From assembly GCF_000189555.1 (NCBI RefSeq), contig NC_017276.1: DNA of 64,000 nt; one strand, 5' to 3'. Source of the stretch: Saccharolobus islandicus REY15A. Its GTDB lineage: Archaea > Thermoproteota > Thermoprotei_A > Sulfolobales > Sulfolobaceae. Below the pieces are notes generated by a model that had not been told where the DNA came from, did no database searches, and was given only the letters and a program-made list of their open reading frames with translations. Positions within the stretch are counted from its first letter, which is position 1. Each line of letters starts with the position of its first letter. A program made the translations under genes and the position numbers. This document shows positions 6,907-59,732 of this stretch, in pieces.

Positions 6907-7446
6907 GTGAATATCGTAGTTAATGTGAAACAGTACTTAATGGTTATCGCTGGCGTATTGGTCAGCTTAGCTATTGCGTCTTTAGTAGTTTATGTCTCTC
7001 ATATGTTTATAACATATACTATAAAAAAGCCTAACATTGTGGAGCGACAATCTGGCTATGCCCCACAAATGTATGAGTTAACTGTGAATGCAAGACCTCC
7101 CAATGGGAGCTATATAAATTCCTACTTTATTTATTCCCCTCTTCAATCCTCTTTAGTGATTAACAAGGATCCAGTATTTCATGTTTATCCAAGTATAATT
7201 GATTTAAACTCATTCAATAATTCAGCTATAATAACTATTTATTACTCAGCTCACGATAGAGTAAATATAGCTGTAACTCAGCAAATTTTTAATGTTAGCG
7301 TGATTAATACTACTGTGATTAATGATGAAATTGTAGCTACTCAAGTGAAAATTACGTTTTATAATGCGTCTCCAAATACGATATATTTAATTCCAATATG
7401 GAACCAATATAATGTCACGTACTACGTTCTAATATATTATGAATAA
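6907..7446 (+). CDS. Membrane-anchored or secreted hypothetical protein
   Basis: N-terminal hydrophobic helix followed by an N/T/Y/V-rich domain with N-x-S/T sequons; start uncertain. Confidence 0.6.
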   Translation: MNIVVNVKQYLMVIAGVLVSLAIASLVVYVSHMFITYTIKKPNIVERQSGYAPQMYELTVNARPPNGSYINSYFIYSPLQSSLVINKDPVFHVYPSIIDLNSFNNSAIITIYYSAHDRVNIAVTQQIFNVSVINTTVINDEIVATQVKITFYNASPNTIYLIPIWNQYNVTYYVLIYYE

Positions 7447-7447
7447 G

Positions 7448-7497
7448 TCAGTCCATCGACCTTTCTTCACTAGTCTAGACGATGTAGGCATCATCAT
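7448..7497 (-). ncRNA. Box C/D guide sRNA
   Basis: Minus strand: ATGATGA (C) + TGCCTACATCGT + CTAG (D') + ACTA + GTGAAGA (C') + AAGGTCGATGGA + CTGA (D); canonical 12-nt guides, 50 nt in total. Confidence 0.85.
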
Positions 7498-7565
7498 GTA
7501 CCCCGTTCGGCTGTGAGCCTTCACGCGTTTTATAACTTCTCGTCAGGCCCAGATAGGGAACGGGG
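7497..7565 (-). ncRNA. Box H/ACA guide sRNA hairpin, fused to the downstream C/D sRNA
   Basis: Lower stem CCCCGTTC/GAACGGGG, pocket CCTATC/CAGCC, upper stem TGGGCCT/AGGCTCA, tandem GA-AG K-turn, ACA 14 nt from the upper stem. Confidence 0.78.
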
Positions 7566-8006
7566 CTTTCTCAATCTTTTATACAATCTATACAAGAATA
7601 TAACAATTACTATCTGGCCTATATCCAGTTGTAATGTAGCAGCATGGTTATAACTTATTTCAACAAGAAAAGGTAGCATTTGTATCTGTGGTCTCCATAC
7701 ATACCATATTAGGTAATAATTAAGATAATTTAGAAATACAAAACTTATACCAGATGCGTCTATGATCATATTGTAATAATCGTTTTTATAACCAGAGACT
7801 AATAAAATAGATATTATAAATATAATTAGCGCTATAAATGCAGAAAATGATACTCCTACCGGAATTGTGAGATTATATGTTACTCCACTACTTGCCCTAT
7901 ATACAAGTGGCTCATCTATTGGAACTAAGGGAGCCATGGAAAGTAGTATAATTGTCAATATTATTGATCCGACTAATACCCAAACATAATACTCAGAATC
8001 TTTCAT
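7530..8006 (-). CDS. Hypothetical membrane protein
   Basis: 158 aa with about four hydrophobic segments; 3' end overlaps the H/ACA RNA. Confidence 0.6.
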   Translation of the reverse strand: MKDSEYYVWVLVGSIILTIILLSMAPLVPIDEPLVYRASSGVTYNLTIPVGVSFSAFIALIIFIISILLVSGYKNDYYNMIIDASGISFVFLNYLNYYLIWYVWRPQIQMLPFLVEISYNHAATLQLDIGQIVIVIFLYRLYKRLRKPRSLSGPDEKL

Positions 8007-10794: not shown

Positions 10795-10848
10795 ATGATG
10801 AAGGTCGATGGGAAATACTGGATAATGAAGAGAATTATCCCCGGCTGA
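10795..10848 (+). ncRNA. Box C/D guide sRNA
   Basis: Fills the aldolase-udg gap: ATGATGA (10795-10801), guide, CTGG (D', 10818-10821), ATGAAGA (C', 10825-10831), GAATTATCCCCGG, CTGA (10845-10848). Confidence 0.82.
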
Positions 10849-10853
10849 GAATT

Positions 10854-11504
<651 letters not shown>

Positions 11505-58861: not shown

Positions 58862-59137
58862 ACATTTGCTGATTTTAAGTTTCTCTTAGTGATATGTCAC
58901 AAAGAATTAGATAGAAAGTATTAAGATGAAGTTAGAAGTCAGAAAGAGAAATGGAGAGTAACTTTTCTAAATGAGATGGGCCGATTTGAACCCATAACTA
59001 TAAGTGTTCAAGCTTGACTAGATTACGGCTCTCGTTATAATAAAGACTATAGTTATAAGTCAAATAATGGAAATTAAATTCAAGATTGAGAATTAGTGTC
59101 ACATTATACCGTAAGAAATATAATAGAAATAATTTTA

Positions 59138-59222
59138 TGCGGGGGACGGGATTTGAACCCGCGCAGGCCTTCGCCAGCGGAGCCTCAGTCCGCCCCCTTT
59201 GCCCTGACTCGGGCACCCCCGC
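59138..59222 (-). tRNA. tRNA-Leu(GAG), intronless, CCA not encoded
   Basis: Acceptor GCGGGGG/CCCCCGC, anticodon arm GCGGA-CTGAGGC-TCCGC, long variable arm, GGGTTCAAATCCC T arm; 85 nt. Confidence 0.96.
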
Positions 59223-59732
59223 ACACCAATACTTTATATTAACTAGGTATAAAGTTTTACCATAGAATAAAACAGAAGGACTTTAGGAAGGAGATAGAAG
59301 TTCCGAACTTTTAAAATTATAATTCAAGTATGAGACGTGCTTGAGAAACTCTCCTTTTGAGGCAATAATGGCTTAGGTTAGTATGAAGAGATGATCTATG
59401 GATCTTGTTTCATTTAGAAACTAAATAAATATGAAGAGATTTTGTTCTACATAGCTATATGGCATAAGAGAATTTCTATAAATTAAGACTATAAACAAAT
59501 TGTCATTATTGCTGATGATATTAATATGGATTAGATTACGAAGGGAATGATATGGATACAATATTATTCGAACTATAGTGGCTAATTATCTCTTTACTAC
59601 CGCTAAAATTCAGAATCCACGGGACGCGGAAACTCGCCTTTTAGTGAAAATAGTCTGATTGTGAGGTTAAAAAGTTTTAGCGTGGTCCCTCGCTTAGTTG
59701 TTCTTTAAAGGTAAGTTGCAGGTGTAAGGTCT

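Follow-up and report, generated by a model that had tools for sequence, protein, structure and literature searches.

Here we describe a guide RNA encoded on the minus strand of a 64,000-nucleotide (nt) stretch of the genome of Saccharolobus islandicus REY15A (NCBI RefSeq contig NC_017276.1; the whole 64-kb stretch is referred to below as the window). The RNA is a chimera in which an H/ACA hairpin is followed directly by a C/D small RNA (sRNA). It is real and functional, and it is already known: it has been described as Sso1 plus Sso-159 (PMC2651775), and its H/ACA half, in all likelihood, as sR115 (PMC11077068). We hold with high confidence that the element is the S. islandicus orthologue of the Sso1/Sso-159 gene, that its H/ACA half is sR115, and that it constitutes a transcription unit of ~119 nt with two independent guide modules. 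An earlier note on this DNA, made from the letters without database searches, had read the region as an H/ACA hairpin running into a C/D RNA, a reading borne out by the fold, the boxes, eight orthologues, and covariation. In effect, a reading of raw sequence recovered an experimentally validated dual guide RNA and essentially its published target. What we add to the published record is small: a two-module layout traced through at least eight Sulfolobaceae lineages, an incidental overlap of the ACA and C boxes, a lasting tie to the 3' end of one membrane-protein gene, a D' guide that appears to drift next to a fixed D guide, and a second sRNA that appears to be aimed at the same 23S rRNA site.

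The RNA runs from G1 (window position 7566) to the A of the D box (7448), such that RNA position i corresponds to window position 7567-i on the minus strand. The first 70 nt make up the H/ACA hairpin, and the last 50 nt make up a C/D sRNA in which two 12-nt guides lie among C, D', C', and D boxes. A7497 is common to both modules, being the end of ACA and the start of AUGAUGA. Read 5' to 3' (7566 to 7448), the two parts are as follows.

H/ACA part: GCCCCGUUC-CCUAUC-UGGGCCU-GA-CGAGAAGUUAUAAAACGCG-UGA-AGGCUCA-CAGCC-GAACGGGGU-ACA
C/D part, directly after ACA and with the shared A: ACA/UGAUGA-UGCCUACAUCGU-CUAG-ACUAG-UGAAGA-AAGGUCGAUGGA-CUGA

The whole RNA and the elements of its H/ACA module, in 5'-to-3' order, are listed here (MFE, minimum free energy; K-turn, kink-turn).

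7448-7566, minus strand: whole H/ACA + C/D chimeric guide RNA, 119 nt (sequence reading, MFE fold, 8 orthologues)
7558-7566, minus strand: lower stem, 5' strand (G1-C9), GCCCCGUUC; pairs with 7500-7508 (G59-U67)
7552-7557, minus strand: 5' guide strand of the pocket, CCUAUC; unpaired in the MFE and consensus folds
7545-7551, minus strand: upper stem, 5' strand, UGGGCCU; pairs with 7514-7520
7521-7544, minus strand: K-turn/K-loop cap, with GA at 7544-7543, a short apical stem and loop, and a bulge plus UGA at 7523-7521
7514-7520, minus strand: upper stem, 3' strand, AGGCUCA (MFE fold, covariation, RNAalifold)
7509-7513, minus strand: 3' guide strand of the pocket, CAGCC; A55, G56, and C57 invariant
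7500-7508, minus strand: lower stem, 3' strand, GAACGGGGU (MFE fold, covariation, RNAalifold)
7497-7499, minus strand: ACA box, 14 nt 3' of the upper stem; invariant in all orthologues

The ViennaRNA MFE fold is exactly the H/ACA hairpin (z = -2.2 over 118 nt; z = -3.4 with the hairpin taken by itself). The 7-bp upper stem, the K-turn, and the ACA at 14 nt that had been called from the letters all hold up in the sequence reading and the fold. The 8-bp lower stem was right as far as it went; with its closing pair, G1·U67 (G-C in S. solfataricus), the stem comes to 9 bp. Between the stems lies a pocket of 6 + 5 nt (5' and 3' strands). A K-turn of the GA/UGA type is the L7Ae-binding motif. The hairpin has the stem-pocket-stem organization, the K-turn (a predicted L7Ae site), and the ACA spacing of the H/ACA class. 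Muller et al. (2009; PMC2651775) cite a 14-nt rule, with which this spacing agrees.

The C/D module is composed of the following elements.

7491-7497, minus strand: C box, AUGAUGA; UGAUGA invariant in the orthologues (C/D pattern match)
7479-7490, minus strand: D' guide, UGCCUACAUCGU, 12 nt
7474-7478, minus strand: degenerate D' box, CUAG, or UAGA one base on; placed by position and spacing only
7464-7469, minus strand: C' box, UGAAGA; UGAAGA or UGAUGA in all orthologues
7452-7463, minus strand: D guide, AAGGUCGAUGGA, 12 nt; GGUCGAU core invariant, register to the D box fixed
7448-7451, minus strand: D box, CUGA; invariant

The module has the C and D boxes, the internal D' and C' boxes, and the ~12-nt spacers of the C/D class, with a D' box that is degenerate. 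Degenerate D' boxes are common among archaeal sRNAs, and in the orthologues this position reads UUGA, UAGA, CGGA, CCGA, or AUGA (CUGA in Sac-sR103, an S. acidocaldarius C/D sRNA discussed below). The pattern TGATGA..TGAWGA..CTGA has two matches in the 64 kb, against 0.00 expected (100 shuffles). An Rfam scan, which the earlier note had named as a check, returned nothing at the gathering threshold, and Rfam holds no family for the chimeric RNA; the only matches were weak ones to C/D families (sR9, sR5, sR1, and sR2; E = 0.3 to 3) over 7446-7511. The stems, whose conservation the earlier note had made a condition of its reading, are conserved.

The strongest evidence comes from comparison across the Sulfolobaceae. 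We aligned eight distinct orthologous sequences from this family, including those of S. islandicus, S. solfataricus, and S. tengchongensis. The two-module layout (H/ACA and then C/D, with order and strand unchanged) is kept in all eight, at lengths of 118 to 124 nt (120 nt from G1 to the D box in S. solfataricus), and thus reaches at least eight Sulfolobaceae lineages with strong covariation. The stems are paired in 96.9% of cells of the alignment, and 10 of the 16 pairs show double compensatory changes (4/9 in the lower stem and 6/7 in the upper stem). None of 500 shuffles reached the observed values, controls in which the pairing was slid gave only 33 to 59% pairing, and RNAalifold on its own returns the identical 16 pairs. 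What is invariant is what would be expected to matter: ACA, UGAUGA, CUGA, the GA and UGA of the K-turn, the AGC of the pocket 3' strand, and the GGUCGAU of the D guide. The K-turn residues G23, A24, U44, G45, and A46 are the same in 8/8 orthologues, with a freely varying loop between them; the variable parts of the alignment are the apical loop and the spacers. At the level of strains, the chimera is identical in seven of eight S. islandicus strains or contigs compared, and M.14.25 differs at one loop base.

The overlap of the two boxes is a different matter. The last A of ACA (7497) is indeed the first A of the C box, as had been claimed, and the overlap itself is not conserved in relatives. 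No nucleotide separates ACA from UGAUGA in S. islandicus, S. solfataricus, and one further orthologue (our locus L148), and elsewhere the spacer is 1 to 6 nt long (lengths of 0, 1, 2, 3, 5, or 6 nt occur in all). Because the spacer varies in this way, the shared nucleotide is a by-product of tight packing and not a conserved device.

The published counterparts fit this picture closely. Muller et al. (2009; PMC2651775) predicted that the H/ACA motifs Sso1, Sto1, Sac1, Mse2, and Ape7 guide pseudouridine (Psi) formation at position 35 of intron-containing pre-tRNA-Tyr(GUA); this family is the first reported H/ACA guide for a tRNA. In that study, Sso1, Sto1, and Sac1 are each “directly flanked” by a C/D motif, namely Sso-159 in S. 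solfataricus, sR4 in S. tokodaii, and sR39 in S. acidocaldarius; Northern blotting revealed a long H/ACA + C/D form (~120 nt) as well as a short form, in keeping with an earlier report of Sso-159 as a 120-nt RNA (their reference 50). Sso1 was active on pre-tRNA-Tyr in vitro with 14 nt between the target U and ACA, no rRNA target was found for it, and the C/D target quoted is 23S U2621 (plus 2645/2648). Toffano-Nioche et al. classify Sso1 as a “10/5/9” fold, which fits the 5-nt 3' guide and the 9-bp lower stem seen here. In S. islandicus REY15A itself, the classic H/ACA RNAs detected number only two, sR115 and sR435 (Li, Wu, and Ye 2024; PMC11077068). sR115, which these authors call a homologue of the RNAs of Muller et al., is enriched with Cbf5 and is active as a reconstituted ribonucleoprotein (RNP); its deletion abolishes Psi35 of tRNA-Tyr and slows growth. 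According to the same study, the family compensates for a degenerate aPus7 in Sulfolobales. The other RNA, sR435, is an rRNA guide for which a tRNA target, U38 of tRNA-Pro, was later demonstrated.

How alike are these RNAs? The S. solfataricus Sso1 + Sso-159 locus has the same gene order as the S. islandicus locus, with a neighboring protein that is 94% identical. The orthologue there, by which we mean the genomic sequence and not the published Sso1/Sso-159 RNA sequence, has identical pocket strands and an identical D guide, the same architecture at ~120 nt, and ACA and UGAUGA abutting in the same way; it differs at a handful of positions, in having G-C in place of G1·U67, in its apical loop, and in its D' guide (UGCCAACAUCAU versus UGCCUACAUCGU). 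In Sac1 + sR39 and Sto1 + sR4, too, the C/D motif comes immediately after the H/ACA motif. Sac-sR103, a C/D sRNA abundant in S. acidocaldarius (25,932 reads; Dennis et al. 2015), carries the guide pair CGUCGACAUAGG / AGGGUCGAUAAC, as do the distant orthologues L143 and L144, and probably corresponds to sR39. The S. acidocaldarius/S. tokodaii type differs from the RNA described here in that its D' guide matches 23S AUGUCGGC without a central mismatch and its D' box is a canonical CUGA.

Two more-remote systems are informative as analogies. Composite C/D-H/ACA small Cajal body-specific RNAs of eukaryotes, such as U85, hold methylation and pseudouridylation guides in one RNA; their H/ACA part is nested in the C/D domain, their targets are small nuclear RNAs, and they carry CAB/Cajal-body signals, so they are analogues and not relatives. 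Pyrococcus abyssi Pab21 (Pf1 in P. furiosus), which the earlier note had named as a chimeric guide, does carry a C/D motif: this archaeal H/ACA sRNA occurs in vivo with and without it (PMC2377435). In contrast to the RNA described here, Pab21 and Pf1 are euryarchaeal, guide Psi891 of 16S rRNA and not a tRNA modification, and have no sequence kinship to it. The second precedent named there, Haloferax sR-h45, could not be confirmed as a chimeric guide and is unmentioned in the Haloferax literature searched.

Based on this literature, the target of the H/ACA module would be U35 of tRNA-Tyr. The 3' strand of the pocket, CAGCC, is complementary to GGCUG, that is, G30-G31-C32-U33-G34 of tRNA-Tyr, with U35 and A36 left without partners. 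A GUA anticodon loop would be expected to show just this pattern, C32-U33-G34 paired and U35-A36 free. Judging from the pairing published in PMC11077068 and PMC2651775, the 5' strand, CCUAUC, would pair with GAUAGG, which consists of G37 and the first bases of the pre-tRNA-Tyr intron (AUAGG). In species of the L143/L144 type, this 5' guide reads CCUACC, and the intron would be predicted to covary with it. The earlier note had predicted the target GGCUG-U-N-GAUAGG without naming tRNA-Tyr; this string contains C32-U33-G34-U35-A36-G37 of the tRNA-Tyr(GUA) loop and agrees with the published Psi35. In the window, ARAGORN (intron mode) and a fuzzy search for the target detected no tRNA-Tyr, only tRNA-Leu(GAG), and a full-text literature search for the predicted target string returned only unrelated primer sequences.

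For the C/D module, the 23S sequences compared were that of S. acidocaldarius (from the supplement of Dennis et al. 2015) and two crenarchaeal genes from outside the Sulfolobales, which were reached via spurious open reading frames (ORFs) in rRNA by comparing stop-free frames of the S. acidocaldarius 23S 3' region with a protein database. That database holds at least 100 such rRNA-derived ORFs, none from S. acidocaldarius or S. islandicus among the matches listed; the two contigs retrieved have GC contents of 60% and 51%. The D guide pairs without interruption over 9 positions of CCAUCGACC in the two non-Sulfolobales 23S sequences and over 8 in that of S. acidocaldarius. Counted from the D box, the fifth guide base faces the U that corresponds to E. 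coli U2479, where the published Sso-159 target (U2621) lies, and we predict from these pairings that the D guide is active. Among the related 23S sequences, the D' guide pairs best with UCGAUGUCGGCU (E. coli 2500-2511), at 9/12 positions and with an internal U·C mismatch (6 + 3); it points, if imperfectly, at the peptidyl-transferase-loop stretch CGAUGUCGGC (E. coli 2501-2510). More distant orthologues carry GCCGACAU, the perfect complement of 23S AUGUCGGC; in these orthologues and Sac-sR103, the D' guide is GCCGACAU or GUCGACAU and lacks the C2507 mismatch. In S. islandicus 23S rRNA itself, the expected matches to the two guides are ..CUCCCAUCGACCCC.. and ..AUCGAUGUCGGCUC... A scan of genome contigs (596 Gb) with CCTACATCGN{10,30}GTCGATGG (17 fixed bases), aimed at orthologues and the 23S target, yielded at least 120 chance matches, almost all of them bacterial, and a scan of viral contigs with a 23S pattern yielded none.

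Across the orthologues, the D' guide base opposite the C equivalent to E. coli 2507 differs: S. islandicus and S. tengchongensis have U, S. solfataricus has A, and the distant relatives have G; a base adjoining this site is also variable in two orthologues (L142 and L147). The D guide is fixed, whereas the D' half-guide appears to drift and may have been weakened in the Saccharolobus branch. The two non-Sulfolobales crenarchaeal contigs (L145 and L146) hold a further feature of their own. In L146 (228-1037), a LAGLIDADG homing-endonuclease ORF sits in an apparent intron, a break of ~630 nt in the 23S alignment in the peptidyl-transferase region, and the rRNA locus of L145 (5001-5702 and 8269-8859) also has a LAGLIDADG-like ORF.

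Several observations weigh against parts of this interpretation. The S. islandicus D' guide places a U opposite a universally conserved C (E. coli 2507) and is followed by a noncanonical D' box; because of this central mismatch and the box, the D' half-guide may be weak or inactive. When noncontiguous pairs are counted, the guide-rRNA matches are no better than those found by chance in 10 kb of unrelated sequence, and the case therefore depends on the unbroken 9-mer and its conserved register alone. On the tRNA side, a scan of metagenome contigs with GGCTGTAGRTRGG...GTTCRAATC (target plus T-loop) gave 10 chance matches, with no tRNA and none Sulfolobus-like, a scan of viral contigs for the predicted tRNA-Tyr target gave none, and the exact 13-mer predicted as the target may be wrong. 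Finally, we infer the identity of the H/ACA half with sR115 from shared traits: both are of the same species, both are single-hairpin H/ACA RNAs with a K-turn, a lower stem, and ACA, and U35 of tRNA-Tyr, across the intron, is the target of sR115 and the predicted target here. The C/D extension of sR115 is unmentioned in PMC11077068.

In total, we favor a model in which the locus would give rise to one short transcription unit whose two modules, probably co-transcribed in S. islandicus, would act through separate RNPs. The 5' hairpin would assemble with L7Ae (at the K-turn), Cbf5 (at ACA and the lower stem), Nop10, and Gar1; its pocket would pair with the anticodon arm and intron of pre-tRNA-Tyr(GUA), leading to conversion of U35 to pseudouridine. 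In this way it would stand in for the catalytically impaired aPus7 of Sulfolobales. The 3' half would assemble with L7Ae, Nop5, and fibrillarin, and its D guide would direct 2'-O-methylation of the U in 23S rRNA that corresponds to E. coli U2479 and S. solfataricus U2621. Full-length and trimmed forms would both be present, as seen in S. solfataricus.

Does the long form itself do anything? The alternative that deserves the most attention is that two separate, adjacent sRNA genes act independently and that the “chimera” is a short-lived precursor or a read-through product without a function of its own; it differs from the favored model solely on whether the long form itself is active. That the ACA-UGAUGA spacer is not conserved (0, 1, 2, 3, 5, or 6 nt) indicates that no precise junction has been selected, and the published record offers it some comfort: a short H/ACA-only form is seen beside the long form (PMC2651775), Dennis et al. 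list Sac-sR103 as an ordinary abundant C/D sRNA, and sR115 is drawn as a plain single-hairpin H/ACA RNA (PMC11077068). However, all 8 orthologues, down to 53% identity of the neighboring protein, keep the modules side by side in one order and on one strand; a spacer of 0 to 6 nt leaves no space for a second promoter; and the long form is detectable in vivo, Sso-159 having been reported as a 120-nt RNA (PMC2651775). On balance, we consider separate genes unlikely, if still a contender. A more distant alternative would accept the hairpin as a guide and give it an rRNA target, as for sR435, which is likewise a classic hairpin with ACA (PMC11077068). Yet the only published Sulfolobales H/ACA motifs that are followed by a C/D RNA are tRNA-Tyr guides (PMC2651775), U-A stays unpaired in the pocket after the CUG, which is what a GUA anticodon calls for, and no rRNA target was found for Sso1 (PMC2651775), whose S. 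solfataricus genomic orthologue has an identical pocket. We regard an rRNA target as very improbable.

It could also be asked whether the motif arose by chance or is an mRNA 3'-end element, with the hairpin serving as a terminator or stabilizer of the upstream gene, which encodes a 158-aa protein, and with boxes that are coincidental. The hairpin does overlap the stop codon of that gene, and no Rfam family matches at the gathering threshold. Against this stand the invariant ACA, K-turn, C, C', and D boxes beside freely varying loops, the ten compensatory pairs, the absence of any expected chance match to the C/D pattern in the window, and the experimental literature on orthologues (PMC11077068 and PMC2651775). 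We give this notion almost no credence; the covariation, together with the deletion phenotype in the literature, refutes it in practice.

A further set of questions goes beyond the favored model. Might the full-length RNA, where ACA and UGAUGA abut (as in S. islandicus, S. solfataricus, and L148), form a bifunctional particle with Cbf5, Nop10, and Gar1 plus Nop5 and fibrillarin on one RNA? Might it instead act as a switch, in which the PUA domain of Cbf5 on ACA competes at the junction with the proteins of the C/D K-turn? If so, this competition would set the ratio of the tRNA-Tyr Psi35 guide to the 23S methylation guide. Might the RNA arise by maturation of the membrane-protein mRNA at its 3' end, without a promoter of its own? 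And could a chimeric sR115 explain in part why fibrillarin and Nop5 copurified with Cbf5 (PMC11077068)? Taken together as one reading, that the long RNA is a bifunctional particle or switch, is matured from mRNA, or accounts for the Cbf5 pulldown, we view these ideas as doubtful. In the literature searched, we did not find the bifunctional, switch, or mRNA-matured readings reported for S. islandicus.

The neighborhood of the RNA contains three further features to which we refer.

7530-8006, minus strand: gene for a predicted membrane protein of 158 aa (ORF list; stop codon at 7530-7532)
10795-10848, plus strand: second canonical C/D sRNA, between the DHDPS and UDG genes
59137-59223, minus strand: tRNA-Leu(GAG), the sole tRNA in the 64 kb (ARAGORN; Rfam 59138-59222, 51 bits)

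The overlap with the 3' end and stop codon of the 7530-8006 gene, which had been noticed from the letters, is confirmed by the ORF list: the 5' 37 nt of the RNA cover the last 11 codons and the stop codon, and the 5' half of the RNA doubles as code for the C-terminal tail of the protein (..KPRSLSGPDEKL). The 158-aa protein is encoded identically in S. islandicus CP001400, CP001403, CP003928, and others, at ~70 kb. Homologues are 94% identical in S. solfataricus and 85% identical in S. tengchongensis, and those in five further assemblies or metagenome contigs range from 80% down to 53%. The chimera is found at or just beyond the 3' end of the gene in every homologous locus, including those where protein identity falls to 53%. 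The overlap usually takes in the final 34 to 55 nt of the coding sequence (L139 to L144, L147, and L148), with L144 alone showing a 25-nt gap. The RNA may plausibly be a processing product of the 3' part of the membrane-protein mRNA, as the earlier note had suggested, or may alternatively start at an A/T-rich box, TTGTATAGA, at about -29 to -21, inside the gene. This box belongs to a tandem TTGTATAGA / TTGTATAAA repeat on the minus strand (7587-7595 and 7578-7586), about -29 to -12 from the RNA 5' end, which encodes LYR-LYK and is conserved in the orthologues. The repeat could be a TATA-like promoter element inside the coding sequence, or its conservation could be no more than that of the protein, the genome being rich in AT.

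On the other side of the RNA, gene order varies. In the distant relatives L142, L143, L144, and L147, a UDG-family gene and a short-chain dehydrogenase gene come directly after the chimera, and in S. islandicus, S. solfataricus, and S. tengchongensis, this place is taken by an ORF of 167 to 186 aa (window 6907-7446). The S. islandicus UDG gene (10854-11504) lies ~3.3 kb off, on the other side of the 158-aa gene and beside the second C/D sRNA. This difference in placement among relatives suggests local rearrangement.

The second sRNA, similar to Sac-sR11 of S. acidocaldarius, reads AUGAUGA-AGGUCGAUGGGAAAUA-CUGG-AUA-AUGAAGA-GAAUUAUCCCCGG-CUGA. The first of its guides and the chimera's D guide are nearly the same sequence, and thus the two sRNAs, 3.3 kb apart, appear to be aimed at one 23S site (..CCCAUCGACC..).

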